Origin: Trichosphaerium sp. ATCC 40318
Taxonomy: Eukaryota > Protista > Tubulinea
Reading direction: 5' to 3'
DNA length: 64,000 bases
NCBI GenBank assembly: GCA_038496445.1
Contig: JALMLS010000255.1
Span: 186,001-250,000 of the forward strand
Part shown: in pieces, positions 1-37,165 of the stretch
How the letters are laid out: the number at the start of each line of letters is the position of its first letter
Numbering within the stretch: position 1 is the first letter of the stretch
Position numbers and translations under genes: made by a program
Notes under the pieces: model-generated
The model's database searches: none
Seen by the model: the letters and a program-made list of their open reading frames with translations, nothing else
Told to the model about the DNA's origin: nothing

Positions 1-1312
1 GGTGTACAGTCTTTCGTCCCTGTCCAAAAAAATTGAGAATTTAACCCATTTTCATAGCCATGTGAAGTGACAACACTCTTCACCTGGATCACAAAAATAA
101 GAACAAAAAAAAATTATCCACAAAAAAAAAAAAAAAAAAGAGCTTGCCTTTTCTCTGTGTTCCTTCGCAACATATAAGAACGCTGCAGAGTTACAAGCAT
201 AAAGCCATTTATCTTTGAACAGATTATCAGCATCTTAAAAAATCAAATCATATTTCACGTGCGTAAATTAGAAGTGTAAAAGTCAGGTTTGAGTGCCTTC
301 ATGTCCAACTCAATTTGACCAACTGCATGCGCACCATCTACAAGGACAAGGATACCACTAACACTTTCAAAAAAAGGCTGTACACAATATGTGGATGTAC
401 CGCTTGTGACACATGTCTATTATTTCCTCCACTGGGAATATAAAGCCAGCCGTGCTGTTGATGTGATCGACACATACAAGCTTAACTTCTTGCGATAGAC
501 CTGCCTCAATGCGCTCCAATATCTACGATAACATACATTAGCATCATCACTTTTTTGGTATCATCAATTCATTGTACGCTATCGGAATCACAAGGTAAGT
601 CTATGATGACTTTAACAAGTTCAACACCATCTACATCTCGCCTGTATTTGCACGTGTTGTTTATAGCACCTTGAAGACAAATTAAAGGATTTGTATGGCT
701 ACCTCTCTTACCATATCCAACGCTCAAGTACAGTATCTTTTCTCCTTTTTTGAAAGGCAAAGATTTGATTACTGCGTTGCATCCTGTTGTGGCGTTTTCA
801 ACAAATACAATATCATCCACATCAGCGTCTTTATGAAAAACACGTGTTAAAACTTTCTAGAGATACCACAAACACGTGACGTACTGACAAATGCAGCAAC
901 CTTTTTAAGAGCGTACAACATGAAATAAGGCATCTTATCACAAATAAACCTGACTGGTTGCAAGTCCTAAAGTTCTGGTTTACTTTTAACTCACTCCATG
1001 AAGTCAAATTGTCATACAACTTGCTCAAGCCATTGTTGTCGTGCGTAGGTAACGACCTTAGGTCTTGAGCCAAAACATCCATTATCTAGCATCTTTATTA
1101 GCACGTGGTTCATCTTCGAACGTCGTTTTTTGTCAAAAAACTTTTCGCGTGCCTAAGTATATAAAGGATTGATCTAACGCAAAGTTTTTACGCATTGGAC
1201 GTCCTAAATCTGCTTTGATGAATTTATCGCTACAAAACGTTGGAAAAAGCCAACTAGGCTCCTCATCAATGTCTTTAGTTAATTTCCAATCTTCTACAAT
1301 ATAATCTAGCAT
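1..1312 (-). CDS. PLP-dependent class V aminotransferase-fold enzyme (L-cysteine desulfhydrase / isopenicillin N epimerase / Egt2-like); 3' end runs off the window
   Basis: Spliced translation from ATG 1312: MLDYIVEDW...FALDQSFIYL-DNGCFGSRPKVV...QPVRF...ADVDDIVFVENATTGCNAV...DHINS...[30 protein letters not shown]. It has the DGAH motif and the PLP-lysine motif (HKW). Multi-exon, with three GC-AG introns. Confidence 0.88.
213..262 (-). other. GC-AG intron splitting the His codon of the HKW PLP-lysine motif
   Basis: TTA C|gcacgt...ttcaaag|AT AAA TGG. The nearest GT donor gives an immediate stop. Confidence 0.85.
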
Positions 1313-1460: not shown

Positions 1461-2765
1461 ATGACAAGCGTATACAACTTTTTCGTTGACAATAGCGACA
1501 GGTACAACTTGTTATTTACAAAAACGGTTCTGACGCCACTATAGAGTACCTAAATCATTCTCAGCTTGGCGTCACCGTATCGTAGACCTATGGAAACAAA
1601 TTCCAAACGCTTATTCAAACTACCAAATACAAATGGAAACGTACGTTAAACTACGCCCTCAACTAAGCGACGTTATTTTTAACATTCAATGATTTAAAGG
1701 CTGGAAGCTCTGAATCGCGACGGATACAGCCTAAACGGAACATGGGTAGAACTAGAAACAACTTTGGATGATTTCACAGCTGTTACAAAGAATGTCGCTC
1801 CACAAGGTCAGAAGACAACCTAATCTTTCCGAAAATATACTCACTGCATTCTTTAGATGATATTAAGGACTGGAAAGTGTATAAAGGAGAGCACGAAACA
1901 GTTTGTCAAGTAAAAAACGATGATTGTATTCTTGCCACGTTGTCACTTTTGGATGACGGATTTAACCCTGTCATGTTGAATATGGCCAACCCTTTTCATC
2001 CTGGAGGAAGCTATAAGCGTGGTGCATCAGCACAAGAGGAAAATATATTTCGAAGAACAAACCTTGCCGATTTAATCGACTCAACAAGAGGTACTAAAAA
2101 ATTTTGTTTGTAAATAAAAAATCTGTTCAGGAAGTCATGGTTGACTTTGTATTAATCTCTTTCTAGGTAAACAGAGACTACTACATCCAATTAATAGAGG
2201 AGAAGCTATCTACTGCCCAAGAGTCCAAGTTTTCAGAGGTACAAGCTCAGAGCAATACGCATTGTTTCCAAAACCTCGGTACGACGTCAAAAAAAAAATT
2301 GTTGGTTCAAAAACACGTGATATTTATATTTTTTCTTAGAACCATCGCAATCATGTGTTCTGCAGCTGTCCGAGATCCAAAAACAGTTATCGATGAAAAT
2401 GGAAATAGGCATCTAAATGAAAGGGATTCCTTAAACACAAAGAGAATCATCTATGCACAGTTCGAAACAGCTATGAAAAATGGACATGATACATTTGTTT
2501 CTGGTAAACCAACCATTTTTTCAACTTTTTTTGTGTTTTTTCCAACAACTCTTTGACTGGTTTTCCAAAATTAGGTGCTTTTGGTTGTGGTGGGTTTAAT
2601 AATCCTCCTGAGGATATAGCAAATACGTATCGGTTTATACAAGAGACATTCTTTTCAGGTGTTTTCAAGAAGATAGTGTTCCCGATTGTTTCTTCCTATA
2701 ACGAGAACGCACAGTCACCCAACTTTATGGCATTTGATAAATGTCTTGCACCCCAACAAGCTTGA
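1461..2765 (+). CDS. Microbial-type poly(ADP-ribose) glycohydrolase, TIGR02452/DUF2263 macrodomain family
   Basis: Motifs MLNMANPFHPGGSYKRGASAQEENIFRRT, SAAVRDP and GAFGCGGFNNPP span several GT-AG exons. ATG 1461, TGA ends 2765. Confidence 0.85.
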
Positions 2766-2943
2766 ATCATTTTCTATAAAATCATCAAGGTTAGCCGGCT
2801 GTCAACGGTTAAAAAAATGTAAAATAAAAGAATTTATAAAATGGGTTTAACGAGTTACTTTCCACGTGGAGGCTTCGAACCAAAGATAAATATCAAAAAG
2901 ATTTATTGAGGAATGTTAATAGGCTGTAAATGTAGGTATTCTA

Positions 2944-4311
2944 TCAAAGTTTAAAAGAACCCTCCCATACACTTGCACATGGATTTGGCGTGCCATAATA
3001 TCCATTGACGTAAGGCTCCTCTGCCTCCCTAAAACAGCCATCTTCTATTTCTATAAACGAAGTGCAAAAGCCATCAAACACACCAAGAGTCAATCCTTCA
3101 AAGTCTTTAAATATGGTTCCAAAAGTAGCTAACTGAGACTTGTGTATTCTAATGTAGTATGCTTTATGACACAAGAATCTGATAGCTTCTGTTGTAGCAT
3201 TCTTTACCAGTGAGATATCAATAGATTCTATTCTTGTAAAAGAACACAAGACATCGTTATTTACAGCATGTGAACATGACCGCAAGTCAATGTGTTTCAC
3301 ATCTGAAACTGCATAAAGTCCTACTTCAGTGACTTGAGACATATAGCAGTTTAACTGTAAGTTCTGCACCCCAGCAAGTTCCTTCAAAATACTATCTGTG
3401 ATAGATAGACAATTTGTATAGAATGACACTATACCCTTTAACGCCCTAAACCCAACCTCTGTTATATGTGGTGTATGGCTGTTAAACAACATCAAACGTT
3501 TAACACCAGATAGATGCATCATTCCTTTGTTTGTTAACTTCTCTGGATTGAACATTAGAACCTTGACTCCAGAAAGAAATGATAGCATATCATCAGGAAT
3601 AAAGAAATGATTAACTAGCATTGATACACTGTGAACTCCAGTTATGTGTTGTAAACACTTTTTTTCGAAAAAGCAGCCATCAGCAGAAATTGTATGAACA
3701 CCTGCAAGAGCTTTGAATGCTTCATGTGTTATATCAGTATCATTAAGCAAGATTGTATGAACACCTGATAGTGCATGAACTCCTTCATCTGTTACACGGG
3801 TACCTGATAGATCTATAGAATGAACACCAGCCAGTGATATTACCCCTTTATCAGTAATATTCCTGCAATCTGATATGTCTATTGTGTGAACACCTGATAG
3901 ATTTTTGAGGTCATTGTCATTTATCTTTGTATGAGATAAATCTATTTTGTGGATATTTCTAAGAGCACTGATACCAAATGATGTCACATTACATCGCCGA
4001 AGCAAAACCTCTGTTGCAGCTCCACAATGTTGTAGCAAGTCATTGATTTTTTGTTCCCCTGCTTCAAAAACCAGGCGACTTGTTGAGATGATGACTGGAT
4101 ACTTTATGATTGCTTCAATGTTTTCAGTTGTTGGATAGATGCGTTTGTATCCGTTTCTGTTGTAGATAATATTCTTGAAGGTTTTACAAGTAACAGAAAC
4201 AGCACAACGTGATGTATCATGGAGAAATGAGAATATTATAAACCAGACGTCATGTATAACTTGGTTAACACCTTCAAGCCTTAGCTCTTTGTAAGGCGCT
4301 CTCTTAAACAT
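2944..4311 (-). CDS. F-box / leucine-rich repeat protein, single exon
   Basis: 455-aa uninterrupted ORF. F-box-like IHDVWFIIFSFL...VSVTCKTF is followed by 23-24 aa repeats of the type L(S/A)GVH(T/S)IDLS...ITD.G. Confidence 0.88.
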   Translation of the reverse strand: MFKRAPYKELRLEGVNQVIHDVWFIIFSFLHDTSRCAVSVTCKTFKNIIYNRNGYKRIYPTTENIEAIIKYPVIISTSRLVFEAGEQKINDLLQHCGAATEVLLRRCNVTSFGISALRNIHKIDLSHTKINDNDLKNLSGVHTIDISDCRNITDKGVISLAGVHSIDLSGTRVTDEGVHALSGVHTILLNDTDITHEAFKALAGVHTISADGCFFEKKCLQHITGVHSVSMLVNHFFIPDDMLSFLSGVKVLMFNPEKLTNKGMMHLSGVKRLMLFNSHTPHITEVGFRALKGIVSFYTNCLSITDSILKELAGVQNLQLNCYMSQVTEVGLYAVSDVKHIDLRSCSHAVNNDVLCSFTRIESIDISLVKNATTEAIRFLCHKAYYIRIHKSQLATFGTIFKDFEGLTLGVFDGFCTSFIEIEDGCFREAEEPYVNGYYGTPNPCASVWEGSFKL

Positions 4312-4638
4312 GAATAGAAAGTGCGTTGCCTTTCACTGAAGAATTATTCCAGGGCTTATAATGGTCAAAGGTTTTCAGAAAAGGTAAGATTTTGCCGCAA
4401 AAACGTGATTAATTTAACCCACTAGTGATACATTGACAAAGCAAGAAGTCACCAACAGTAGGCAAGTTAATGCTGCCTCGTATTTTGTCATAATTACTTG
4501 TTTAAGCGTCCCAAAAGACCAGTTAAAATTGTCCAGTTGTCTATTAATAGAAAAAAAGATTGTGTTTACCGGCTATTGTACATTTATTGATTATTATCTT
4601 GTGTCTTTGTACATAATTGTTTACCACATAATAATCAT

Positions 4639-7600
4639 TCATTCATCAAAAGAGACATAAGTTTCAGGTACAAGCTTGAACACGGCACTATAAAAAAAGT
4701 AAGAATTCCACACATTCTAAGAAACCAAACGTACTCTCCGCCTTTTATATGTCCTTCCAGCCACCCATCTCCTCTATCTTTGTTTCTAACTTTTAATTTA
4801 TCACCTTTCTTTGCATTCAATTGTGTTTCGGCACTCCCTGTAAAATCGAATAGCATTGTGCCTGCGAACAGCGTCAAACAAAAACAACAACAAAACAAAA
4901 AAAAAACTCCTACCTGTCTTAAATGTCATGGCAGCTGCTGTCCTTGGTGTCGTCTCTTCAATCTCTGGCGCTGCTATAAAATCGACATAACCACTTGGTA
5001 CTAATCCAAGAGGCCCATCTTTAGTAGCTCTGGCTTCCATCCAACCATCATGTCGGTCCAAGTGTAAAAACAAAATAGCTCCTTTCTTGAAACTCAACTC
5101 ATTCTTAATCTCAGTATCAAAGTCGTATTTCGCCTTCAGCAACGTCTCTTGTTGGGGTTCAGGTTTTTTAGCTTCAGATTTTTTGCTTGGTTTGCTATGT
5201 CTACGCTTCTTGGGGCGTGTAGTTGTCGAAGCATCTTTCTTTTCGCCAGACTCTGATTTTTTCTTGTTGTCTTCCTTTTTCTTCGCTTTTGGATCACGTT
5301 TAGGTTTGTGTCGAGGTTTCATCGTTTTGTTAGCATCTTGCTTAGTATCCTTTGATACAGAACTCGATTTTGTAGCATCCTTTGAAGTCTTGGAGTTGGA
5401 TTTATTACTCTTTGACGGCTTGCTTGTGGAATCCTGTGAATTCTTTTTTAAAGACGAAGAATTTTCGCTTTTCTTTTGTTTTGTGTTCTTTGTTCGCTCA
5501 GTTTTTGTTGAAGAGCTACGACGCATATTTATAACCGTTGACTTTTTATCACGTGACGGTTCTCTTTTCTTTTCTGGGGTAGAGCTACGCGTTGCTCTCG
5601 GTGGACTCTTTGCCCTTGATGCTGGACGCGTTTTCTGAGGGCTCTTTGTTTTTGACACGTGACTGTCGTTTGCTTTGTCATCAGGCTCAGATTTCTAAAA
5701 AAAAGCAGTTTTTAGTATTTATCTAAGATAAAAACACGTACATTGTCTTCAAGTCGTTTAACATAGTTAGAAGGAATCAATCCAGTAGCACCATTAAGCT
5801 CAGCATGCCACCACTGACCCTTCATCTTTGTAACTTGAATAACATCTCCCTAACAACGTGTTATAAACAGCTCAAGCAATTGTAAAGTACTCAAAGAAGG
5901 TACCTCTTTGAAACCAAGATGAGTTGGTTTGACAGGCTTAAAGTGGAACATCCCAACTACTTTGAAAGGCTTGAAAATCGAATTCGAGTTTTCAGGCTCC
6001 TTCTTTGTAGAGGACTCTTTTTTAGCAGCTGTAGTTACTTTTACGCTACGCTTACTACCCTAAAAGAAAATAATAAGAAAAAGTTTGTCTGTGAGCAAAC
6101 AATCACGCACAGATCGCCTGGGTCCATCAGAACTCTGTTTAGGCTTTGACGTTGCTGATGAAGACTTACGGAGCTTCGATTCTGTCTTTGGTACGTCTAC
6201 AACAGGCTTTTTCTGTGCAGGCGCTGATGTATTCGCACCAGGCTCCTTAGCAAGTGCATTTTGTACTTGCTCCATCCAAGAAGAACTCGTCAAGTCCTAT
6301 CACTGGAATTAGATGTCATTTCACAAAAACAAAAAGTGACACATACAATCGTGTAACGGGCTGACTTTTTAGCAGCTTTTTGCTGTGCCAGCGACATGCC
6401 AGCCCGTTCATTATTCTCTCCTTTGTATTCAGTCTCTGGTGTATCAACAGGAGGAGCAACAGAAGATGAACGACTCTTTGGTTTTGGAGGAGGAATAGGA
6501 GGTAACGGTTTCTTTGATGTGATTGTCAGAGGAATACCATTATTATCAACTTTGATGGCATTCGGTGGCATTGACATTGGTCGCAATCTACCAAATTTTC
6601 GAGGCTGTGGTCGCTTTGGAGGAACCTTGAGAGACTAAGTCAAAAACAAAATAAAAAATATACTAAATAGGGATTGTACCTTCGTTGCAATTGATTGCCC
6701 TGCATCAACTTGGCTACGTTCATTTGATGAATCTTGTACTTTGAGCTGATCCAACTTGGGTCGTTGAACTGTAGGAGGTCTGCTTGGCTTCTTTGTAGTG
6801 GCAGCAGGTTCTGGTCGGCTAAATGACCTTGGTATTATTATTTTTTTTGGTTGTGGCGATGGCTCAGCAACAGCCACGACTGGCGCCGGATCCGCTACCA
6901 CAGCAGGAGGATTTGGTGGAGGTCGCTTCACAGGTGCTTTTTTGAGAGGTCTTTTGAAAGCTGCTTTCTTGCCTGGCCGTTTAAAGAATCCTCTCCCTTT
7001 CTTAGCTGCAAATTTTTTACCACCTGGAGGTCTAGGTAACGCAGAATAGCCTCTCTTAGCCAGTAATCCCAAACCCTTCTTACCTCCTTTTTTCGGTCTA
7101 AATACACGCTTCTTGCCTCCAAATTTCCTTGGTCCTGCACGCTTTACATTTGTGTTTGATTTGGGTACAAAACTGGTCCTAAAACAAGTGTCATAACAAC
7201 ATTGCGAAAAACTGAAAATAATTTTTGACAAAATAGCAACACTGAACTCTGACGGGCTCTTACGTTTTAGGAGGCCATGCTCTTGCTACATTAGGACGCT
7301 TCGGAGGAGGTCTGGCTGCTTTGAATCCATAATCACGACCTAGAATTGTTTTAAAAGGAAAAATGCTACAAATCAACTGTACCTTTTGGTGCGCTGTTTA
7401 CACGCGGTGTTGGTCTACTTGGCGTAGCGATTTTTGGCTTTGGTGGTTGCACAACAGGTGACGGTTCGCTTTGGTAAAATAATTCTTCGGTTGGTGATAC
7501 AGGAGGTTCCACATTATGGTTTACGGCGTTTGGAGTATTGAGAGATGATTTATTGTTTAGTTTGTTGAGGAACGGATTAGTTGGTGAAATAGGCACCGCA

Positions 7601-10849: not shown

Positions 10850-11632
10850 ATGGGGGACGCGTCAGAGGGTCTGTTAAAGTACTGTAATGCGGCGCTTACG
10901 TTGGCAGCCGATGAATATTCAGCAACAAACCAAGAGCTGAGCGACAATAGCGTAAGTACACCGTTCTGGCTAACTTACATAATTTTGTACGATAGGACTG
11001 CATTGAAATGGTATTTGATGCCTTGGAACGCTGCTTGTCGTTTCAACTAAAGGGTAACAACCAAACGTTAGTACATTATTTACATTTTCTGTTAGAAAAA
11101 TTATTCGGGCGAGTCACTTACTGGCATGTATTTGAGGCACTATCAGAAAAGCTCTCTTGGATCAGAGAGCATGTTGAATGGATAAAAAAGGATATTCCAC
11201 AGGCAGATGCAAGAGGCACAGTAGCTTTCTTAAAACCCTTTCTAATGCCTCAAAAGGTCGCGCTTTCTTACGTTATGCGTTGAACCAGCGCGTTTTAGGT
11301 GACGTATGCAGGGCATTGCACAAGAACAAACCAATGTTGTTTGACTACTACAACAAGGTACCTAAGCCTCCATTGCAAACTCTCACATACCACGTTAGCA
11401 TGCTGTCCTTTACCCTGAAGATACAGCCTTGATGTTCTTTCAGATGCTGAACACGCTAAAAAACATTCCATTTAGCTTGAGTTTAAACAGAATGGATCAT
11501 GACGTTAATGTACCACAACATCAACGTAAAAGGTTTACAAAGCACCCTAAGACAGCAACAAGGAGTAAAACAAAGGGTAGACGCATGGCAAAAATAGAGG
11601 AACGTGTCACAGTAGTGCCAAAAAAAGTGTAA
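10850..11632 (+). CDS. RUN-domain protein
   Basis: VFDALERCLSFQLK...YWHVFE...DAR-GRAFLRYALNQRVL...LFDYY...MLNTLKNIPFSL match the RUN blocks. It may instead be spliced to the next gene (see findings). Confidence 0.8.
11216..11256 (+). other. GC-AG intron within the RUN motif
   Basis: AGA G|gcacag...caaaag|GT CGC GCT TTC restores ARGRAFLRYAL. The GT donor 5 nt downstream leads to a stop. Confidence 0.85.
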
Positions 11633-11721
11633 ATGTAAAACATATTTCAGTGAACAGTCAACGTGTTTATTTTACGATTTCGAAAAAATAATAACAAAAC
11701 CCCAGCAAAACTAGAAACTCA

Positions 11722-14700
11722 ATGGGTGCTATGGAACCAGAGCACGAGTACTTTAATGAGCCATACGGCTCTGATAGCGGCTTTATGTTTGAAGGGGGTT
11801 CTGAATTTGCTGATTTGTCCAGTATGTACCTACAAAATACAACTACGGTTAGTAAACGCGCAAAAGAATATTTCTCTGAGGTTTCGTAGGACGTTACAGA
11901 AAAAGAAGCGCTCAGCAACCCCAATTTACCTAATTTATCGACCCAAGTTGCCAACAGCACCCAATCAAATACATACATGGATTATGATCCTACAACACAG
12001 CCTCTGTTCGCTCAAGTACATCAAAACGGCGCATGTTCGCACCTGTATAGTAATATTTGCATAGTCTATCCCACAAGCGGACTTTAACCCTGCGATAATG
12101 AACCACAAACCCATTAATATTAAAACCGAGCCATCTTTTTTTGAAACAGATGCCATGGTTGACAGCTTCGGCATGAATGGTACAGCGCTCTCAAACAGAG
12201 AATAATAAGACCACTTCAAAGCATCCTAACCTCCAGAGCAGATGCATGGCATGGCGACGAACAAATGATCTTTGGTGACGAAGACACATCGGCAGAATCA
12301 ACCGCTACGTCACCACCAGTCTCAGAGCTTCATCATCACATCAAAGTGGAACCAATGACGACAATACCAACTCCAGAAGCTGCCTTACCTGAGATTGCCC
12401 CACAAGGTAATTACAGGCTACATATCGATGGTGGTACGTTAAAAGAAAAAGTTACCTTTTGGTATACAGTTTTTATTAAGTTTATGTGGTAACTAGTACC
12501 TGCCAAATCTCGCGTCGAGACACAAATGAAAGTAAGAATTAAATTGGAGTCAAAACAGGGAGGATTCATTCCAAAGAATTACAGCGTCCTTGTGATACAG
12601 GATTACATGCTAGCGCCCAAGTCTCTAAGGCGTAAAGGTATCGAAATTTTTTTTGGGAAATTTAAGATGTACCAGAGATACCCTTATTGCTCATGTTTTC
12701 GTTTAACGCTAATACAATGGTTTAGTTACTGAAAAGAACCGAAAGATACAAAATCAACTTCAAGCGACAATGAACCGTGAAGGAGGTGTGATCCTCACAA
12801 GTAAAGTATGTTCACATTTAGTTCACGTGTACTTGGCCTCTTAATGTATTGGATAGGTGGTTCTTTGTGGTGATACCAATAAATCAGTTGATAGGTGCTT
12901 GGGTTGTATTGAACGTGAGAGAAGGAACTCTCAACGAAAGTTGGAGTCTAAAAACAAAAAACCTAAGCTAGAGCCATTGAATGTTGAAGATGAAAAATCT
13001 CGTATTCTGCAATGTTACTGTGAGCCATTCATGGGTACGTTGGTTTACTAACTCAAAGTACCAATTACAGTCGCCTAATAATGTATAGACTTTCGTAGTG
13101 GAGAAGCTATAATCAAAACGAGAATAACATGTTACTGGTACCTCCTTTTTTCCTTTTTTTTTTGATGAGTCATCGTCCCTGCTCAATCACGTTTTGACTT
13201 GTTTTTTGATAGCCGTCATCACAAGGAAGAACAAGGATTTAGGATTGTTATGACCCTGTTAGATGGTAGAACACACGAGGTGTTAGGAAGTGGTATTTCT
13301 ACACCTATACTGATCACAGACGACCATAAGCTTCAAGGCAAATCCTCAGCACATAAAAAGAAAAGAAAGAGAGAAACGTCATCTAGAGTTCTTCAAGTCA
13401 TTCCAGCAGAAGGTCCTGTAGCTGGTGGTATATCAGTAACCGTACTTGGACAAGATCTTCAATCAAGTACAGTCAACATTAAAAATCATCAAAACTGACT
13501 TGCGCTCCTTTTAGACTCAGTTGTTTGCTTTGGTGGTAACAAGGCTATCTCAAAGTACTGGTCAGGTACTTCATACATTGCATTATAATTTAGTAATCAA
13601 CCATGCTCACTTATACATTGTAGACAGTACAATTGTGGCGACATTACCTCCTTCAAGTGTTGAAGGTCCTGTTCGTGTGTCGCTGATGGGAGAGAAGCCT
13701 CCAAGCCCAGGAGAGCAAGTAATATTTACTTATAAAGATAATGCTAAGGAACAGTTGATGGCACTTGCATTACAGCTCATTGGTATGAAACTTACAGGAG
13801 AAATCAAAGATCCAACAAGGTACCAACCAGACCTAACATTGTATCTTATTTTTGCGTCTAGTATCGCCAGAGCGATTGTGCAACAAAGCCAAAACAAGAC
13901 CGGTAGTCCAGTCCAGCAAAATCATTCTGCGCCTCCAGGACAAACACTACGCATGTCATCAGTTGAACACCTGATTATGCGATGTCTTGTTGCAGCAATG
14001 AGATGTGAAACAGAGTTCAATGTAGAATGGAGTACAAGCACAAAAGCAGGACAAACTATTCTTCATATTTGTGCTCTGCTTGGGTTCCGCCATTTGCTTA
14101 AAGTTGTACTTGGCTATTGCTCGTCACCTCTCATGTTCTTGGACATTCAAGACACCAATGGTACGTATCACCAAGCTCGCGATGCGTCAGCCTTGTTAAT
14201 AAGAATGTAGGGTTCACGGCACTTCATTTCGCAGCGTTGAAAAATAGAAGGGAGATACAGAGGATTCTATTGGAACATGGTGCATCGCCTAATATGCCAA
14301 CGGAACTTGGTGTATTTCCTTATAACATTGCTATGCGAAGTGCTAGATTGGAAGCTCAAAGACGCAACATTAAAAAGATGAAGATGCTACAACAACAGCA
14401 ACAGCAACAAGAACAAAGAAAGGAAAAACCAAAACAACCGGAAAAGCCTACTGTTGTCCCAACCGAACAAGAAAAGGAAAAACAACCTGAAAGCAATGAA
14501 AATACCGAGCAGAATACTGAGGAACTTGAAGACGACAAACCAGATGAGAAAACTGAGGATGTGATTGTCAATATCCCAATGTCTTCTGTGGATGAAGAAA
14601 ACTATGAAGATCCTATTCTTTCTTCTACACCTCCTCGATCACCTAAGACTAAAACAAACAGAGTTAGAGAACTATTTACAGAGTTTTCTAGTGGCATTGA

Positions 14701-15338
14701 GTCAATGTCTACAACGATACAAGGCATGAGTTCGCAGAACTCTTTGGAGGATGAAAAAGCTAACGCTCAGAACAATGAAAAACTCGTCTTCAGATCATCT
14801 ACCATGCAAATGCTATTCACCTGGATAGTCAGTATCTGTACCTGGGTATGGACTAAGCACCGCTGGACAGTTATTTCAGGTAAGGAGGCTTTTTTTTAAC
14901 AACACTTCATTCCAACTCTTTTTTGAACACGTGTTGTTGTCGTTGTGACATTCTTCTTACTGGTGCTTAGGTTGTGCTTTGGCTATGGGTGTTTTACTCT
15001 TAACAGAGCTTGCTCCTGTGTTACCATCATTTACAAATGTTCAACAGCTACGAGTTGGTACTTGGGCGCCTGCTGTATTAAGCGCTTCAAAACCCAATCC
15101 AGAGAGTATACAAGTTGATGAAACAAGTAACAAACTCGATGCTAAGCATATATTAACGTACTTAATCTTCTCAGTGCTCGTTTTTCTGAATATATGGCAC
15201 TACAGAAAACGGTAAGACAAACAACTTTTAGTTCTCTTTATTGACTTTTTTTTTAGGCTCACAAGTATTGGTAGCGTTGCTCTCCTTTTGACGTTTGGTT
15301 TATCGTTTGGTAGCTTGATTTTAGTTCAATCTGGATGA
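11722..15338 (+). CDS. Spt23/Mga2-like membrane-tethered transcription factor (DNA-binding domain, IPT/TIG, two ankyrin repeats, C-terminal TM helices)
   Basis: VPAKSRVETQMKV, CLGCIERERR, RITCY-CRHHKEEQGF and TPILITDDHK; IPT motif VIPAEGPVAGGISVTVLG...IVATLPPSSVEGPVRV; FTYKD..EQLMALALQLIGMKLTG; ANK motifs GQTILHICA and GFTALHFAA; hydrophobic C-terminal segments. TGA at 15336-15338. Confidence 0.85.
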
Positions 15339-15480
15339 GACATTAACTGATCCCTATTTTTTTCTGATTGTAACAACACATGTAAATAGTAATTGCGTAA
15401 AAGCGATTTGTAAAATTAAAACATTGCCCAACCAAAAAAAGCTAAAATTTCTATCATCTCGTCATCCTTAATTACCCAGT

Positions 15481-17523
15481 ATGTCTCTCATTGAAAGCAT
15501 GTCACGCATTGCTATAGTTATAATGCTATCAGCGGTTATCTATGCAGCAGGTGCATACCTTGTAATATTACGTATTTACTGGTGTTAGAACAACAAACTG
15601 CTTTTATTTCTGGCAAGGGTACAGACACCGAAACTTGTGGCACTATGGAATCGTAAGATCGCTCTCTCTAAGGTTTTTATACTCAATCTATCTAAAAATC
15701 TTTTAGACCTTGTTTAACAATACAATATACAACATCAAGGTTCAAAAACGTGACCAGTTACGCCAATCACGTGCGATAAATTTTATTTTGTTTTATTTTG
15801 AATAGATGCTCTACAAATACAATTTGCGGATAACACAGTGCTCACACAAGGTATACCAACACTGCCGTGTAAGTATTGTTACGCTTATTCGGATATTAGG
15901 ACTACCAGTATCACTCAATGCATCGTCTTTAGGTGTGTTTGAGCCTTGATATGGACTTTATAACATTGGTAGGCATGATAAATCACCTTGAAGTTGTTGG
16001 TCCTGGACAAATATTCGGAGAATACCAATCTGGTTGTTTTGACGTACTAAGCACTAAATTGGTGATATAACTGAATTGCTTAGATCGAAGATATAAATGG
16101 TGACACTCAAGTTGTATTTAAAGGCGCGTGATGACTATAGTGGGTAATAGTGGGAGTGGCTAATTGATCATCAAGATTTGACTTTTAACGCGTGCTACCG
16201 AGATAGTCAGTTTGTGAGTGCAGGCGTGTTCGCTTCTGTAAGCCCTTATCTCAGTTTGACATTCGAGGGCTGCACCTTTACAGAGTGCGATTAATAAAAA
16301 TCTTTGTAAATGACACCTTATAGGGGACGTGGGGCGCTGGGAGGAGCAATGAGACTGGGTACAAACTACATGTGTTTTTGAAAATATCAACTTTATTGTC
16401 TGTAGAAAATACACGGAATTTGACGATAATTGATTCGTCTTTTTCTCAATTTGATGCGTTATATGGAGGGTGTTTATATCTTATTAATGTGGAAAACGTA
16501 TCAGTAAAGAACGTGGAATTTCAACTGAACACAGCCTCAGGTAAAGGCGTTGTGTTGTACCTAGATACGGTACCAGTTGTTCAAATGGACAACATCACAA
16601 TGCACAATAATACACCTTCCCTTGAGCACGTTGAAGGGGTACGAACAACTACTTACAAAATGGATATGTTTTCTTACTGTACATAGGCCATTTACGCCAA
16701 GAACAGTACACTGATGCTTACAAATATCAAATCGAGCTTCAACGGAAGGCAAAGGTAAATTCCAGGTTGTATTATGTAGTGACTAATATTGTTAGTGCTA
16801 TTGGCGGATTTGTTTACTTGTTAAACTCAGATTTGCACTTGGAAGATGCATCACGTGCGTTTTAAATCTGACTTGGTAACTTTGTTTTTAACATGTTTGT
16901 ATTAGTCATTAAAGACAAAGGTCATTCGCGTGTAGCATGTGTAGATTCAAGCATGGAATTCATAAACGTGAATATAGAAGGACCAGATGATAATGCTGGA
17001 ACAAGTTTCAATTGCACCAATTGCCAACCAGATGCGCTATGCAATATCACGTGCCCGTGTTCATCATGCCAGGATTGTGGATCAGGTACTCAAATACGCA
17101 AATCTTCTTTATGTAACTTTACCTAGGCGTATGTGCTCGACAACAAACTTCAGATGGAGACTGGTGCAAATGTCATTTGACAGAAGAACCTGCAGATTGC
17201 GGTACGACAATTCCACAAAGTGTTTTTTTTTCTAATTGGATGTGGTTTAGGTGTCTATGGAAACTGTACCATGTCCCAAGGTAATCCTATATGCGACTGC
17301 CTAGATGGATACGCTGGCGTACCTTGCTTACGGAGGAGGCTAACAGCAGGTATAAGCAACAAGGAAAAAATATTGTGTTAGATTAATTGTGCTTCAAGGT
17401 TTCATAGCGCTGATAGCAATAGCTGTCACTGCGGCTGTACTCGCTATGCTGGGCATGGCACTGATTTTTATTTTCAGAGTCAGGAGAGAACGAAAATATG
17501 GCGCCATTCGAATTATACAGTAA
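15481..17523 (+). CDS. Type I membrane/surface protein: signal peptide, beta-helix-like (pectin-lyase/Pmp-like) region, EGF-like Cys repeats, TM helix, short basic tail
   Basis: MSLIESMSRIAIVIMLSAVIYAA; G.GTDTETCGTMES-PCLTIQ; ALYGGCLYL and GGFVYL repeats; CDCLDGYAGVPC; TM FIALIAIAVTAAVLAMLGMALIFIF followed by RVRRERK. TAA at 17521-17523. Confidence 0.72.
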
Positions 17524-17731: not shown

Positions 17732-20700
17732 TTAATAGATCAAGTCTACTAAATCTATACAATCGTCTGTTATCTTTGTGCCTACCATAGATCCCATAGT
17801 GCCAAAGTGCTTCCCTTGTGATAAAAGTTTCAAAGTGCTTTCTGCTGCTTTGGATGTATCAACCTGAGACGAAGAGATTCCCCTATCAAGCATAATCTTG
17901 TAAAGGTCATCAGCTTGTGATGGCTTGTTCTCTGCCTTCAGACAGTTCATTACCATCACATAGCTTGCTGATGCTACTTTGTGTTGTAGCGCTTGATTAT
18001 CTTTAAGAAGTTGAGCACTCAGTTCAAGCTTACCCAACTTTGCTGAGGCATAAATCGTTGCTTCATAAGCAGCAGTAGTTATTGATTCTTTGTGTTTTTT
18101 CATAGCATTGAAACACGCACAAACCAGTGCATAACGTTCACGTTCAGCAGCATGGCAAGCCAAAGCATTACAGCTAGCAAAGGTCGGACTCATTTTTGCT
18201 TGTATCATCTTTTGGTGGACATCAAAAGCGACATCGAGTCCTATTCTCGAAGAAATCTCCAAAGCTGTATCAAGTAGATGCTTAGGAGCCCGAGGACAGT
18301 GTTCTATAATATGTGTGATTATCTTATCCATATTTGAATGTAAACCAAGGTTGTTTAAGCCACGTAAAAGGATGATATAGAGTTTTGGTGTCACGTCAAA
18401 TTTGTACTCTTGGACAAAGTCGAAGACTTGGATCATTTGGTCTGTTCTGTCCGCGTTAACGCTTTCTATCATTACATTCATAATCTCTCCAGGTGGTACC
18501 TCAGTATCCTTAGATGCTGCATATTTCAAAACACCGAGAGCTCTCTCAATAGATTTGGTTTGAAAACATGCGTCAATAGCTAACTTTACAGATTGCATTG
18601 TTGGCGCTATACCGTTTGCCTCAAGATCTTCAAACACTGTAATTACAATCTCTGGATCTTTTTCGATACGTTCCATGACCACTCTAGAAAAAAAAGAGAA
18701 AGTGTTAGTATTCAATGGAGACAGAATTGCAAAAAGTTTTGAATTTGAAAAAAAAAAAAAAAAAGTCAAGATTTTTGGGTTTGCTGACGTACTTGTACAG
18801 TTCATCGTTTGTTGGTAAATTGTTTTCTCTGGCGTATTTGTACACTTCCCAGCATCCATGAGTGTCTTTTTCAAATTTCCTTGCGACAATGCTAATGTAT
18901 TTGGGAATGACATCAACACGAGGATCTTCAACCCATTTTTTTAATAACTCAAAACTACGTTCAGGCGACAAGTTCAGCAAAACAGCGTTATGAGTATCGA
19001 AGTCTGGCTTAATACCACGATCATGTAAGCTCTCAAAGACATCCAACATGGCAGCATGGTTGTCTTTTCGTCGCAAGTAATGAATAAGAGTGTTGTACGT
19101 ATAAATATCAGCCTCAACGCCACGTGAACTCATATCCGCCAATAGCACTTGCATACGCTCTGCGGCTGTTTCTTTCATCAAGCTCTTGTATAAAGGCGAA
19201 TATACATCATCTGGATCATCTGTAACAAGCTCTGATATCTCAGATCGTATTTGACGTGGTACGTGAGTACGAGTGGCTTGTGTGAAACCAAGCATGAGGA
19301 CAGTGTAAACAGCATTGTTCGGTACTAGACCTTGAGACTGCATGCTAGTCAGTACGCTTACAATGTCTGCTGTTCTGTTTGCCTCAGCCAGCACTTTGAG
19401 TACGACATTATATGTATGAAGCGACGGCATTATACCTCTTTCTGGTAGTTGTTCAAGCAGTGAGAGCATGTCATCAATGTGACCTTCAAAATCGTGCGTA
19501 TCTTTTCGTCTACTTTGTGCGTTCAACCACGTCGTAATAGTTTCTAGATTGTGGCTCTTGCCTGTTTCCTCCATCTCGTCCAAGACGTCGATTGCAAGGC
19601 TACTATTACCATCATTCAAGAGAGTGTTTGCCATCACATTATAGACAGATATATCAGCAAGCCCTTCGGCTTTAGCAGCATCAAATAAACGCAGCGCATG
19701 ATCCATTCTGTCTTGCTGCGGTGAACCAAAGTGACTAATAAGTTGGAGATACAATGAAGAACTCTTTTCTTTAGAGCCATTTATAGATTTGTATAGTTCC
19801 AAACTATCTTCCATCTGTCGCAAAGAATAAATAAACAAATAATCCAAAAAAATCACAACAATACTACGAGCTTGTAGTACGTCTTGTTGTATAAGTTTGC
19901 ACGTGTTAGCGTACCTTATTCATGTCACCTAAGAGCTGTGCTAATTGTACATAGTGTTTTTTACCCATAGGCACGCCACGGTCTCTCAAATGCGTAAACA
20001 AATCTAAAGCTGTCTTGCGATCATTTTTCTCATGCACAAGCTGAGCCCATAAATACGCTTTAGGCTTAAAGGGAACACCTACAATAAAAAGCCAACATTA
20101 ACATCATAATAACACAATCATAAACAACATTGAGAAACACCTTAACTCTTGTTCCTCTCCAAAACAAATTTTTCGAAAAAATGTCGTGTCAAAAAAAAAG
20201 TACGTACTGCTCTTGAATTGGGTGACATCCTCGTAGAGTGTACGTAAAATACTATGGGATCTACAACGCTTAAACATAATATCAAATAGCTGATACGTTG
20301 GCTCTACAGGATGATCTGATTGCTTCATTTCATTGTACACTTCAAATGCTAGCTTCTCGGTTGGCGCCTTGGAGATCATACGACGGTATATATCCTCTGA
20401 TGGAACCATTTTTTGCTCTGATGTCAGCGTTTGAAGCTCTTTGAACAGAAAATCAAAGTCGCGTAATTCTTCCATGCACTCAGCGAAGTTTTGTTTATTA
20501 CATGCCCCTTGTGTGACCTTTTTCAAAAGGTACGCTTCTTTCACCTCTAAGGTTTTTTAGATGGCTTAAGAAAGCGCCATACGCACGGCTTTGATGTGTT
20601 TGATCGTGTGTTGTAGCCACTGATTGCTTTTTCGGACGTATTGGCTCCACTGTTTCTTGTGTCTCTGAAAACGGCACCGCTGTCGACCTATAGCTATATA

Positions 20701-20815
20701 AGCACTAATTATACGGGTAATAACATTCGTACTGTTCTCTAATCGTTCTCGTACGAGAAATGCTCCGACGGGCAACAATAGTCGCTTTGGTACTCAATAG
20801 TGCGTACTTGAACAT
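17732..20815 (-). CDS. Pentatricopeptide-repeat (PPR) protein, predicted mitochondrial
   Basis: ATG 20815 gives MFKYALLSTKATIVARRSISRTRTIREQ (basic/hydroxylated, acid-free presequence). Many 35-aa repeats follow, e.g. PSLHTYNVVLKVLAEANRTADIVSVLTSMQSQGLVPN and ADIYTYNTLIHYLRRKDNHAAMLDVFESLHDRGIKPD. Confidence 0.88.
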
Positions 20816-25802: not shown

Positions 25803-26285
25803 GAGCCTGGATAAAATATTACGCGGCTAACGCATAAAAAACAGCACGTGGCTTAACATGAATTCTCTTTATATTCATCATAAGCCACAGCGTCCACAAA
25901 TACCTTCTTTTGCGATAAATACCGTTGCACTACGGGCTTGGATGCGCTGGTGCACTTTTACAGCTGAAGGAAAAACACAGCAAGCAGTGAAAGGTTAATT
26001 TGATAGCGCTGACAATGAAGTTCACCTGACGATCGTACCAGTGCCTTAATTCATCGAGAAACTCACCTAAAGATCCCGAAGGCTTTTGCAACCAAAATAG
26101 AGAAAAAACTTAGGAGTTTTTCAAAGTACGTTTACTGAAATAAGAAGCCCAAACCCCTTGTTTAACCAATCTAGACAAAATGAGAGTCTAACAGTGGTTA
26201 GCAGAAAAGGTTGGGTAGTTTGCTTAAAAGCTACTTGGGTATTCACGTAACCAATGCCCGACTTGATTGTACATAACAACAAATA

Positions 26286-27804
26286 ATGAACGCCTTCAAC
26301 AACTTCATACCTATCGCTGTAAGTAATACACTACAGGATCTGCCACATACCTTGAAAAAGGGGAGGGAGAGATCGAAGATAGCTTTGAAGCAAGCTGCCA
26401 ACAACATCTCATCGCACTTTGAACAAGACACGACATGGATTGATGATGCAAGTGTGGGCATTGAGTCCTTACTAGGACATCCAACCCCAGCTACTGGGTT
26501 GCAACAGAAAGACTTTACGTACGATATCTATTGGCAAGCAATGTTCACAGGTCTCTTTTATGTAGATTTATTCAACAAACCACACAGGAACTAACAGACG
26601 AAAATAATACTCTCACGTTTACTGCATATGCTCCGAAAGTATTCAATCGTATCAGGAACATGTCTGGCATAAGCTTACAGTCCTTTAAAGAATCACTAGG
26701 ATTAAACAATTTAAGACCAACTAAGGTACTAGATTGGAAGTTTGACACGTGATATTAACACACAAATAGAATAATCAAGGCAAGAGCGGTGCAAACATGG
26801 CTTTTTCTGCAGACCACACCATGATACTCAAGACTGTATCAAATGTATGTAGAAGCGTATAGCTTCCTTGCTCAATACACTGTAGGCTGAGAGTGACTTA
26901 CTGCTTCAACTGCTACCTTCGTATGTATCCCATTGTTCTCTCAACCCAGACACGCTTCTTCCCAAGTTTTACGGACTGTTTGCAATCAATAGATCTGGTA
27001 TTGGATCCTCAACTACTCGATTTGTTGTAACGAACAATGTATACTCAAGGTACATAAAGTCGGATTTATACATATTGACCGTTAAAAGCGCTACCCACTT
27101 CAACCCTGCTGAAAAGTACGACTTGAAAGGCTCAACTTATGGTACAACTCCGCGTTTGTACCTTATATCTAACGCCTGAAAAAGGGAGAACAGCAACAGA
27201 AGATGATGACTCAAGGACAGCACCAACACTAAAAGATGTAGACTTTATAAACAAGAATAAGAAAATCTTTTTACCTTCGTCATTGCAAGCAAAGATGGAA
27301 TCACAACTATACATAGACTGTCAGTTTCTACAGTCTAACAACCTCATGGATTACAGCTTGCTTGTTGGGGTACATAGTCCACGACTTACAAATTTCTGAT
27401 TAAATTAGATCGACTACGTTACCACTGTTGGACCTTCAGGGCAATCACACGTAGCATTACCGCGAACTAGAGAAGGAGCATCTTGTTGGCGCTTGTGTGA
27501 TGGCTGTACGTTTCAGTTTACGTAGTTATTAAACTAATAACCGACACAAGGCGTGTGTAGTTGGAACGGTGATGAAAAAAGGACTGAATACGTCTCTTTT
27601 GGCATAATTGATATTTTATGCGAGTTTGGCAAATTAAAGCGCGCTGAAAGTTTCTTCAAAGGACTTTCACGCGTAGGAGGACATTCTGCAGTTGATGCAT
27701 CTTCGTATGCTAACCGATTTTACAAATTTATTACAGGCGCTGTTACAGCGCAAGAGAACGCGCCAACTGCGCCTAAGCACTCTATAAATCCGTTTTTAGT
27801 GTAA
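26286..27804 (+). CDS. Phosphatidylinositol-phosphate kinase (PIP5K family)
   Basis: FTAYAPKVFNRIR, GKSG, ILKT, LLPKFYGL, KYDLKGST, LKDVDF, DCQFLQSNNLMDYSLLVG, FGIIDIL, YANRF. The start codon is provisional. Confidence 0.9.
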
Positions 27805-36319: not shown

Positions 36320-37003
36320 TTATTTGCTATTTTTGCCTTTGTTTCTGTTTCTATTATTTCCTCTGCCTCGCTTTTTTGGTGTTTCCCACTCTTCAACTAT
36401 CTCCCATTCCAACTCATCAGGTTTTTTTTCGGGCTCTTTGACAGGTGGAGTTTTCTTTTTAGGTGGTTGCGCTGCCTGTTTCTGTGGTTGTTTGGCTGGA
36501 ACTGAAGTTTGCTTCATTTGCCCTCCAACTTGCTTCTGCCCGCCAACTAACGTTTTTTCGTTATGTTCGCGTATTTGACGGCCCTATCATTTTTAAAAAG
36601 TGACAGCTACGTGTGACGGACCTTGCTTTTGTAAACATGAGATTTACGCTCTAGCTCTGGCACATGGCCTGCCCGAATCTCGATGGCTGGGCGCTCAGAG
36701 CCGTCCGCACGCTTTTCGCGTTTTACTGTCGTGTGTTGTTTGGACGGTGTTTTAGGGTCTACTTTAACTACTTTTTCCGTTGATTGCGCGGTTTTTTGCG
36801 TGTTTGGTGCAGTTTGAGTTGCTTTGTTGTCTTCTGTGCCAGAGGGTTTGTCTTTGGAGCCCTTTGTTGGTGTGTTAGCGTTTTTTTCCGTTTTTGATGC
36901 GCTAGTAGAAGGCTAGAGCGGTGTAAACAATTGGCAATGTATTTCGGTTCACCTTGTAATGGAAATTTCCCCTGCCTCTCCTCTTAGCACCACCACTACT
37001 CAT
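36320..37003 (-). CDS. PYM1: PYM/WIBG-like partner of Y14-Mago
   Basis: Three exons from ATG 37003. KRADGSERPAIEIRAGHVPELE...VYKSK matches the Mago-binding motif (R.DG+.R....++.G+VP..E...Y..K). Confidence 0.65.
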
Positions 37004-37165
37004 GTTGAACGACTGGTATACTTAGCTCGTTTAAAAAGTTTGATTTTTGCGATAATTATTGAAAAATAACTCACCAAATAACTGCTCGGAGTCACACAAT
37101 CGCCTCGCGTTATCTTGTACTATCGACCAGCCGATAAATGGTTAAATAATACAGCACAAATAATT
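37004..37165. promoter_or_regulatory. Compact bidirectional promoter (PYM-like / TOR)
   Basis: 162 bp between divergent start codons. Confidence 0.5.

Follow-up and report, generated by a model that had tools for sequence, protein, structure and literature searches.

Does an amoeba carry its own version of the Spt23/Mga2 membrane-lipid sensor and, if so, how would that protein be anchored in the membrane and released from it? The textbook example of a eukaryotic sensor for lipid saturation in membranes is Mga2, which has been treated so far as a fungal device. Our literature search, which included Amoebozoa, Dictyostelium and phylogenetic terms, found no publication on non-fungal members of the Mga2/Spt23 family, and the only distribution study that we found searched Fungi alone (PMC11658701). 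The locus that raises the question lies in a 64,000-nt stretch of the genome of Trichosphaerium sp. ATCC 40318 (contig JALMLS010000255.1, positions 186,001 to 250,000; hereafter the window, whose own positions are used throughout), where an earlier note, made from the DNA letters, had described a Spt23/Mga2-like gene with an unusual membrane anchor. We consider it likely that this gene encodes a Spt23/Mga2-type membrane-anchored transcription factor, resident and expressed in its host, for which we propose lipid-regulated proteolytic release.

The gene spans 11722-15338 on the forward strand, in a frame-consistent GT..AG model of 15 exons with a 2802-nt coding sequence (933 codons); the coordinates in the earlier note were exact, with the ATG at 11722 and the stop codon at 15336-15338. 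All 14 introns are GT..AG introns, with lengths of 42-91 nt. The exons are as follows:

Exons 1-5 (+): 11722-11847, 11890-12015, 12065-12179, 12239-12433, 12497-12637
Exons 6-10 (+): 12726-12805, 12857-13034, 13089-13137, 13213-13466, 13515-13565
Exons 11-15 (+): 13624-13819, 13862-14160, 14211-14879, 14971-15211, 15257-15338

Spliced RNA contigs from runs X1, X2, X3 and X5, which represent three studies, back eight of the 14 introns:

First four (+): 12016-12064, 12434-12496, 12638-12725, 12806-12856
Last four (+): 13138-13212, 13820-13861, 14880-14970, 15212-15256

The other six introns and the start codon come from the gene model; RNA contigs cover intron 2 and exon 3 in the N-terminal region, but confirm neither its introns 1 and 3 nor its start codon. 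Both introns that flank exon 14 (14880-14970, and 15212-15256, which is spliced in runs X2 and X5) are spliced in RNA, such that exons 14 and 15 are attached to the rest of the gene. Retention of intron 14880-14970, with an end at 14896 that would leave the Trp-rich stretch described below alone, was rejected as the main form because a spliced contig crosses the junction. A spike in RNA depth over a CAA/CAG run was set aside as a repeat-derived artefact. The genome contains a second copy of the gene, in which the same blocks recur and four or more hydrophobic segments are present; the two copies are diverged, lie on large contigs, and have introns in the same short style as those of neighbouring genes. 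The locus is an expressed resident gene, with two paralogues that have host-style introns, and it is spliced in RNA.

To which family does the gene belong? Pfam, phmmer, hydropathy and motif scans were all run per exon piece, on unjoined exons, and the part of the protein that precedes the anchor has the following layout:

11722..12433 (+): N-terminal region, exons 1-4; no Pfam match; acidic, and hydrophobic at the very start (EFADLSSMYL)
12497..13330 (+): p53-like SPT23/MGA2 DNA-binding domain, exons 5-9 (PF25603), with SRVETQ, CLGCIERERR, RITCY-C-RHH (hyphens mark exon boundaries) and ITDDHK
13331..13381 (+): basic KKKRKR stretch, read from the exon 9 translation; a putative NLS, from its composition
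13382..13819 (+): IPT/TIG domain (end of exon 9, exons 10 and 11), then the family-specific LMALALQLIGMKLTG block
13862..14345 (+): ankyrin repeats (end of exon 12, start of exon 13), PF00023
14346..14800 (+): low-complexity linker, a polyQ run followed by a Lys/Glu/Pro-rich and acidic stretch, in the exon 13 translation

PF25603 (SPT23_MGA2_DBD) matches three consecutive exon pieces colinearly, at profile positions 9-49, 71-120 and 152-189, with scores of 22.6, 27.3 and 38.7 bits (E = 1.2e-4, 4.1e-6 and 1.3e-9); two of the three pieces exceed the cut-off of 27 bits on their own. A profile search of the genome also recovers the PF25603 exon pieces of the window gene, and the DNA-binding exons are colinear with homologues in an exon-by-exon comparison. 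The IPT/TIG domain follows directly, an arrangement by which we judged membership of the Spt23/Mga2 family. Its TIG match is weak (E = 0.024, from the exon 9 part alone) because two introns split the domain over exons 9-11; exon 11 scores 44-47 bits against the corresponding region of Arcella, Pyxidicula and Mastigella proteins that carry PF01833. For the ankyrin repeats, PF00023 scores 27.1 bits (E = 4.4e-6; cut-off 21.1), and it takes alignment to the consensus of the homologues to recognise the first repeat. Neither the Rel homology domain (PF00554) nor the CG-1 domain matches any exon piece at E up to 1. The blocks that had been listed from the letters are all present and in order, namely SRVETQ in exon 5, C..C..RE in exon 7, the RITCY-C-RHH string in exons 8/9, ITDDHK and the IPT start in exon 9, LALQLIGMK in exon 11 and the ankyrin repeats in exons 12-13, and the polyQ/acidic linker is likewise found in exon 13. 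On the combined strength of the PF25603 pieces, the ankyrin match and the exon-by-exon homologue matches, we assign the window gene to the Spt23/Mga2 family, as the earlier note had done. By analogy with Mga2, for which a p53-TAD-like segment has been reported (bioRxiv 10.64898/2026.08.31.748402), the N-terminal region encoded by exons 1-4 may be an activation segment. A search of the ESM Atlas with exon 9 pointed weakly (scores up to 0.84) to IPT-bearing factors, one Mucoromycota SPT23/MGA2 cluster among them, and was given no weight in the assignment.

The closest relatives of the window gene are not fungal. The best totals in the exon-by-exon phmmer comparison, all from colinear matches, are 159 bits for Arcella, 143 for Mastigella and 138 for Pyxidicula. 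The proteins of Arcella intermedia (A0A6B2KX84), Pyxidicula operculata, Mastigella eilhardi and Mantamonas plastica (EukProt) have the same domain blocks, as do the metagenome proteins P0005, P0006 and P0016, although identity to the window gene is only about 40-60% in the best blocks. A single branch splits fungal from non-fungal sequences in a full-length tree (SH-aLRT 99). The window exons were left out of that tree because of their low coverage, and the tree was repeated on the DNA-binding region alone; all six host pieces, from both copies, group there with the non-fungal sequences, across a branch supported at SH-aLRT 99. This phylogeny had been named beforehand as a check on the reading, and it places the window gene in a non-fungal branch of the family that includes Amoebozoa, Mantamonas and other eukaryotes.

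These results bear on whether the gene is a long-standing resident or came from a fungus, through contamination or a recent transfer. It is chiefly in fungi that the family is known, and fungi supply the majority of the database matches; moreover, the genome has at least 73 matches to the fungal-type Zn2Cys6 domain, a fungus-like trait of the host. However, the genome also has at least 46 SH2 matches, which argue against a fungal host. The two paralogues are diverged, lie on large contigs and match their neighbours in the short style of their introns, all host pieces sit on the non-fungal side of the tree, the closest similarity is to Amoebozoa, and the anchor module described below is common only to the non-fungal homologues. 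We therefore regard contamination or recent transfer as scarcely credible. The arguments already made from the letters, that the host is not a fungus and that host-style introns speak against contamination, thus stand on the evidence gathered here, now joined by the SH2 count, the second paralogue, the grouping of both copies and the RNA splicing. Of the neighbouring genes that had been called non-fungal-like, two are borne out, by an SH2 match (33376-33552, minus strand) and by kinase exons; a suspected SH2 piece at 20569-20793, which contains a GAFLVRE string, had no Pfam match and was rejected. As further observations on the host, its intronless HSP70 is 65-68% identical to those of animals, fungi and plants alike, which favours none of the three as a placement, and its tubulin genes are too broken up by introns to serve as a query.

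How is the protein anchored? The remaining part of the gene encodes the following features:

14801..14879 (+): Trp-rich interfacial stretch MQMLFTWIVSICTWVWTKHRW, directly before the first span
14971..15211 (+): exon 14, with span A CALAMGVLLLTELAPVLP, a loop of ~40 residues with a conserved NP, and span B ILTYLIFSVLVFLNIW
15257..15338 (+): exon 15, with span C IGSVALLLTFGLSFGSLILV, three residues and the stop codon

Hydropathy, computed per exon with a simple scale, peaks at 2.03 in span A, 2.43 in span B and 2.27 in span C (Kyte-Doolittle), and both exons are RNA-spliced to the gene; a C-terminal membrane anchor is likewise a feature by which we judged family membership. The Trp-rich stretch scores about -7 kcal/mol per 18 residues on the Wimley-White interfacial scale, with a muH of at most 0.31; it had been described as amphipathic, and is better called strongly interfacial. 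It aligns with a W..YR stretch of the homologues, and scores 5.5 bits at positions 3-50 of an HMM that we built from the C-termini of nine non-fungal homologues, with the host excluded. On the same HMM, the scores are 12.8 bits for exon 14 and 13.9 bits for the paralogue, values reached by none of 500 shuffles (the shuffle maximum for exon 14 is 7.1 bits), whereas fungal C-termini score at most 3.3 bits. Span C scores -0.2 bits, giving no sequence-level homology signal on this HMM; its position matches that of span C of the homologues in the alignment. Pfam searches of the three-span module in seven homologues and the paralogue returned only sub-threshold noise, and therefore no known family covers the module. 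The multi-pass anchor of about three hydrophobic segments that had been read from the letters is thus upheld by hydropathy, by the homologue alignment and by the C-terminal HMM.

The charges around the spans fit the positive-inside rule: a basic KHR precedes span A, the loop between spans A and B is neutral to acidic, and span B ends in a basic HYRKR turn that separates it from span C. The predicted topology places the N-terminus in the cytosol and the C-terminus in the lumen; should the Trp-rich stretch itself cross the membrane as a fourth segment, which is conceivable, this topology would be inverted. All nine non-fungal homologues (Arcella, Pyxidicula, Mastigella, Mantamonas and five more) share the multi-span anchor of the window gene and its paralogue, with two to three spans, whereas the fungal homologues have one span, which carries FW(I/V)P. 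The window gene and the non-fungal homologues have in common the W..YR stretch, a span A with E..P, the NP loop, a span B that ends H-(Y/F)-(R/K) and a terminal span C, and none of them has a PY motif; span C of the Arcellinida homologues still begins with FW, unlike that of the window gene. Judged by these alignments, the anchor is a conserved module composed of a Trp-rich interfacial stretch, a span A ending in E..P, a luminal NP loop, a span B with a basic turn, and a C-terminal span C. Since this layout is common to other non-fungal organisms, the Spt23/Mga2 family is older than fungi. What is new here would be the three-span anchor outside fungi; the family itself is known, and homologues with the same anchor are present in public Arcellinida, Mastigella and Mantamonas data.

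How might such a protein be released? Processing of Mga2 proceeds through Rsp5 and its LPKY motif, insertion of a loop into the proteasome, and stalling at the IPT domain. The regular expression [LP]P.Y finds nothing within any single exon of the window gene, as the earlier note had reported for LPKY/PPxY, and [LP]PxY is absent from all nine non-fungal homologues; it occurs upstream of the span in chytrids and Hysterangium. Profile searches of the genome found no contig shared by WW and HECT matches, although the counts from these searches are lower bounds, the assembly being fragmented and intron-rich. With neither a PY motif nor a WW-HECT ligase detected, the release trigger is probably not Rsp5-type ubiquitylation, and the absence of the PY motif from all non-fungal members, together with the absence of a WW-HECT pairing, points toward a different release mechanism.

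By analogy with yeast Mga2, we propose that the protein would form an IPT-mediated dimer in the ER membrane, where its anchor would read a property of the lipid bilayer. Regulated proteolysis would then free the N-terminal part through the IPT domain, and the freed part would enter the nucleus and activate lipid-metabolism genes, such as a delta-9 desaturase. Our preferred guess for the release step is that the proteasome enters at the low-complexity linker, as an internal loop, and is halted by the IPT domain, ubiquitylation being the work of another ligase. Lipid sensing and cleavage would follow for the window protein if the analogy holds; a distinct release mechanism is likewise a proposal.

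An alternative is regulated intramembrane proteolysis in the style of SREBP, with no proteasomal processing: spans A and B would be arranged as a hairpin around a luminal loop, and cleavage of that loop on the luminal side, or a change of conformation, would allow a site-2-type or other intramembrane protease to cut span A at E..P. The conserved Glu and Pro at the end of span A, the Asn-Pro of the loop conserved in non-fungal members, and the absence of both the PY motif and a WW-HECT ligase speak for such a device, and the hairpin-plus-loop layout resembles that of SREBP. Nonetheless, the protein has kept a long low-complexity linker as well as the IPT domain, which signals the proteasome to stop in Mga2, and we consider this alternative unlikely. 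Less likely still is a factor that stays uncut in the membrane and works from there, in the ER or the nuclear envelope; it could, for instance, tether or sequester partners via its ankyrin repeats and IPT domain, or act at the inner nuclear membrane. Three spans make a firmer anchor than a tail-anchor, and no processing motif is recognisable; yet conservation extends to the DNA-binding residues and to a pronounced basic stretch for nuclear import, every characterised family member is processed, and the inner nuclear membrane would be hard to reach for a protein with an extraluminal part of ~800 residues. We thus favour proteolytic release, by way of the proteasome.

The three-span module might even be the original device for membrane sensing and release in the Spt23/Mga2 family, already in place by the time Amorphea and CRuMs shared an ancestor, if not earlier. 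On this view the yeast sensor, with its one helix and its dependence on Rsp5, would be a fungal reduction in which span C alone was retained, and ancestral release would have operated without a PY-binding ligase, possibly via a cut in span A or in the loop; we offer this scenario tentatively, and hold it to be rather doubtful. Whichever way the anchor evolved, the window gene, its paralogue and the nine non-fungal sequences have, outside fungi, a different conserved three-span anchor and no Rsp5 docking motif. They provide a comparison set for asking how an anchor in the membrane translates a property of the bilayer into a decision on proteolysis, and which parts of the yeast mechanism go back to the ancestor, be it helix rotation, Rsp5 or the IPT stop signal. 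They also extend the p53-like DNA-binding domain, computationally, to amoebae.

Several known systems resemble the window protein in part. CAMTA (CG-1 - TIG - ANK - IQ) has the same order of DNA-binding domain, TIG and ANK, but is soluble, and the window protein has neither a CG-1 match nor IQ motifs. NF-kB p105/p100 likewise combines an Ig-fold DNA-binding part with IPT dimerisation and ankyrin repeats, and the model for the whole NF-kB p105/Mga2 group is partial processing by a proteasome that halts close to the IPT domain; by contrast, the window protein lacks a Rel homology match, a glycine-rich region and a death domain, and is membrane-anchored where p105 is soluble. SREBP is also a transcription factor that is bound to a membrane and regulates lipids; its two spans form a hairpin around a luminal loop, and the first of them contains a helix-breaking residue. 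However, it has an unrelated bHLH-Zip DNA-binding domain and a large C-terminal regulatory domain that binds SCAP, and no sequence similarity to the window protein. The nearest systems are the OLE-pathway saturation sensors, Mga2/Spt23 of Saccharomyces cerevisiae and Mga2 of Schizosaccharomyces pombe. Besides a proteasome- and Cdc48-dependent processing of its precursor that responds to lipid saturation and leads to induction of the delta-9 desaturase, a fungal OLE-pathway sensor in the strict sense has a single FW(I/V)P helix and LPKY/PPxY, and groups with fungi; the window protein departs from it on the last three counts. It has three spans and a Trp-rich interfacial stretch rather than one span, no FW(I/V)P sensor motif in the last span or in either of the others, no LPKY/PPxY Rsp5-binding motif, a luminal tail of only three residues, a polyQ/acidic linker and a non-fungal host. 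Nevertheless, it shares with the yeast proteins the DNA-binding domain family PF25603, reported as p53-like (bioRxiv 10.64898/2026.08.31.748402), the order DBD-IPT-ANK-linker-membrane anchor, a cytosolic N-terminus and luminal C-terminus (predicted for the window protein), a basic turn before the last span, and two paralogues per genome.

Reading window positions 11640-15480, with frames and splice sites checked by script, gave a gene of 15 exons on the + strand whose ATG (11722) and stop codon (15336-15338) fall exactly at the limits proposed in the earlier note, 11722-15338. Its coding sequence is 2802 nt (933 codons), and all 14 introns are GT..AG introns of 42-91 nt. We compared window 11600-15500 with contigs from four public runs in three studies; although these runs are only presumed to be RNA, contigs without introns cannot be genomic, and they therefore count as transcript evidence. 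Eight of the 14 introns are absent from the contigs at exactly the predicted borders:

12016-12064, + strand: intron spliced out in contigs of public runs
12434-12496, + strand: intron spliced out
12638-12725, + strand: intron spliced out
12806-12856, + strand: intron spliced out
13138-13212, + strand: intron spliced out
13820-13861, + strand: intron spliced out
14880-14970, + strand: intron spliced out
15212-15256, + strand: intron spliced out

The gene is expressed; the other six introns (1, 3, 7, 9, 10 and 12), like the start codon, come from the model only. Since the introns at 14880-14970 and 15212-15256 are spliced, the two final hydrophobic exons belong to the transcript. Summed contig depth rises to 1200-2400 over a CAA/CAG (polyQ) run at window 14351-14481 in runs X1 and X5; we rejected this peak as a sign of expression and treat it as an artefact, because the contigs at that place, each 31 letters in length, contain mismatches and so derive from other repeat-bearing transcripts. 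Contigs of other runs differ by single letters, at low depth, at 14344 (T>G), 14746 (G>A) and 15137 (C>T), probably reflecting strain differences.

The Pfam scan and all homology searches used separate exon translations. The Spt23/Mga2 DNA-binding domain (SPT23_MGA2_DBD, PF25603) matches three consecutive exon pieces at successive profile positions, 9-49, 71-120 and 152-189 (E-values 1.2e-4, 4.1e-6 and 1.3e-9); a weak TIG (IPT) match begins at the end of exon 9, and exon 13 holds an ankyrin repeat (27.1 bits, cut-off 21.1). Neither Rel homology nor CG-1 matched any exon piece at E up to 1. Each of the diagnostic blocks previously described is found in the translations, in the order SRVETQ, CLGCIERERR, RITCY|C|RHH (intron-split), ITDDHK and LMALALQLIGMKLTG, and the polyQ run followed by a Lys/Glu/acidic linker does lie downstream of the ankyrin repeats. 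By Pfam's definition, these matches place the gene in the Spt23/Mga2 family. The Mga2 domain is reported to be p53-like and to bind DNA via a basic helix (preprint bioRxiv 10.64898/2026.08.31.748402).

Hydropathy, calculated separately for each exon, gave three clear spans at the C-terminus, preceded by a Trp-rich stretch:

exon 13 end, + strand: Trp-rich stretch upstream of the spans, MQMLFTWIVSICTWVWTKHRW
exon 14, + strand: span A, CALAMGVLLLTELAPVL
exon 14, + strand: span B, ILTYLIFSVLVFLNIW
exon 15, + strand: span C, IGSVALLLTFGLSFGSLILV, then three residues and the stop

The earlier note had described three hydrophobic segments and an amphipathic Trp-rich stretch; the segments and the stretch are there, but the stretch is non-amphipathic (hydrophobic moment at most 0.31), and its interfacial free energy is very favourable, at about -7 kcal/mol per 18 residues. 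The predicted product is a DBD-NLS-IPT-ANK-linker protein with a three-span C-terminal module. Basic residues precede span A (KHR) and link span B to span C (HYRKR), and the loop joining A to B is neutral to acidic. Under the positive-inside rule, the N-terminus is therefore predicted to face the cytosol and the C-terminus the lumen.

A PF25603 search of the host's 70.3-Mb assembly found one locus besides the window gene, on contig C102:

C102, ~113600-117500 (2600-6500 of locus L004), + strand: paralogue, a second Spt23/Mga2-type gene (PF25603 search, frames read)

Its frames carry SRVETQ, C..C..RERK, RITCYCRHH, ITDDHK, IPT, LELALQVIGMRL and ANK in the order seen in the window gene; a Trp-rich stretch, YWFWMRQTALNIWNRHRY, and four or more hydrophobic segments come next. 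A DNA-binding piece of this paralogue, searched with phmmer against 1.84 billion cluster representatives, matched only 51 proteins at E up to 1e-3, the best at 64 bits, indicating that public data hold no close relative. Cluster look-ups of the longer matches named the Amoebozoa Pyxidicula operculata, Arcella intermedia and Mastigella eilhardi, and Mantamonas plastica of the CRuMs; the others were metagenome or SRA proteins on eukaryotic contigs and many fungi, early-diverging and other. A profile from seven non-fungal proteins added 383 proteins, every named one fungal. Two further EukProt proteins were also matched, and no match came from dictyostelids, Acanthamoeba, Entamoeba or Naegleria, an absence left unproven by the word index that limits the search.

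Compared exon by exon with phmmer, the window gene is colinear with the collected homologues, with totals of 159 bits for Arcella, 143 for Mastigella and 138 for Pyxidicula, and at most 127 for the best fungus. In an unrooted maximum-likelihood tree of 29 full-length homologues, one branch (SH-aLRT 99) splits 20 fungal from nine non-fungal sequences. In an unrooted tree of the DNA-binding region, to which three window exons and three pieces of the paralogue each contributed a row of their own, the six host pieces all lie on the non-fungal side of a branch (99) uniting 18 fungal sequences; with unrooted trees and short fragments, finer placement is unreliable. A family search and phylogeny, as suggested in the earlier note, found non-fungal homologues and placed the host pieces on their side of the tree. 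That the gene is a fungal contaminant is a much less likely explanation, and neither tree gave any sign of the host genes nesting inside a particular fungal group.

The anchor also differs between the two branches. Scored by the identical hydropathy rule, fungal homologues show a single C-terminal span, usually with a basic stretch before it, an FW(I/V)P start and a luminal tail (one span in 76 and none detected in 29 of 105 additional fungal matches); non-fungal homologues have two or three spans at the extreme C-terminus, except Arcella, where only the last was detected. In the alignment, the non-fungal proteins share a conserved order that runs from W..YR through span A (ending LL.E..P), an NP loop and span B (ending H-(Y/F)-(R/K)) to span C, a layout with which exons 14 and 15 of the window gene align. 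Against an HMM of the nine C-termini from non-fungal homologues, host excluded, exon 14 scored 12.8 bits (HMM positions 58-135), equalled by none of 500 composition-preserving shuffles (mean -0.5, maximum 7.1), and a paralogue piece scored 13.9 bits, again equalled by none of 500. The Trp-rich pieces of the window gene and paralogue lie colinearly upstream (5.5 and 9.1 bits), and 14 fungal C-termini scored at most 3.3 bits. Exon 15 gave no HMM signal, so span C corresponds by position only. No Pfam family matches the module, which on this evidence is conserved among non-fungal members, host included; the multi-pass anchor first noticed in the window thus holds up.

The host genome has at least 46 SH2 matches, one of them within the window; in fungi, Spt6 is the only SH2 protein known, while Amoebozoa and Holozoa have many. 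The SH2 count, gene-tree position and anchor type indicate that the host is non-fungal and probably amoebozoan, in line with the non-fungal genome suspected earlier. At least 73 matches to the fungal-type Zn2Cys6 domain (PF00172) are also present, an unusual pairing in which SH2 abundance points away from fungi and zinc-cluster abundance is typical of them. Four cytosolic HSP70 genes are intronless despite the intron-dense genome, with best public identity just 65-68%, alike for animals, fungi and plants, so that HSP70 did not help to place the host. These and other features are:

window 17735-19919, - strand: pentatricopeptide-repeat gene (PPR_2, 102 bits)
window 26277-27801, + strand: PIP5K-type lipid kinase gene (62 bits)
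window 33376-33552, - strand: SH2 match (28.6 bits), probably the SH2 neighbour named in the earlier note
window ~37000-46476, + strand: large multi-exon gene with FATC-like tail, which looks like a TOR kinase gene
contig C8, 25652-27466: intronless HSP70 gene
contig C8, 66110-67924: intronless HSP70 gene
contig C56, 189563-191377: intronless HSP70 gene
contig C56, 211415-213229: intronless HSP70 gene

By analogy with Mga2, the protein would dimerise through IPT and reside in the ER membrane, its anchor would sense a bilayer property, and its N-terminal part would be freed by proteolysis, enter the nucleus and switch on lipid genes. A pattern scan for the Rsp5-binding motif [LP]P.Y was empty for every window exon, as the earlier note had it for LPKY/PPxY, and for all nine non-fungal homologues; chytrids and Hysterangium have the motif some 100 residues before the span, and it occurs in 19 of the 105 additional fungal matches. 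The 19 WW and 44 HECT matches in the host genome, lower bounds for an intron-rich assembly of 642 contigs, have no contig in common, so a Nedd4/Rsp5-type ligase was not detected in the host assembly. In yeast the IPT domain is the stop signal; the window gene keeps this domain together with a long low-complexity linker that could plausibly serve as an entry loop, and we therefore favour release by the proteasome, begun by a ligase other than the Rsp5 type. Intramembrane cleavage in the manner of SREBP is the main competing reading; it is suggested by the hairpin of spans A and B, by the helix-breaking E..P and by the NP loop on the luminal side. That the protein stays permanently membrane-bound is a much less likely reading.

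Databases already show the family beyond the fungi, since the Arcella and EukProt proteins carry precomputed Pfam matches. Our literature search found no published mention of non-fungal members, and the single published distribution analysis covered Fungi only (PMC11658701). Fungal sensors in the strict sense have a PY motif and one FW(I/V)P-bearing helix, and group together in trees; the window gene has neither the motif nor that helix, and its pieces fall outside the group. The orientation predicted for its product is that of yeast Mga2, and the yeast helix may be a remnant of span C. For specialists, the window gene and its relatives, known here from sequence alone, offer a natural contrast to the one-helix, Rsp5-dependent mechanism of yeast.
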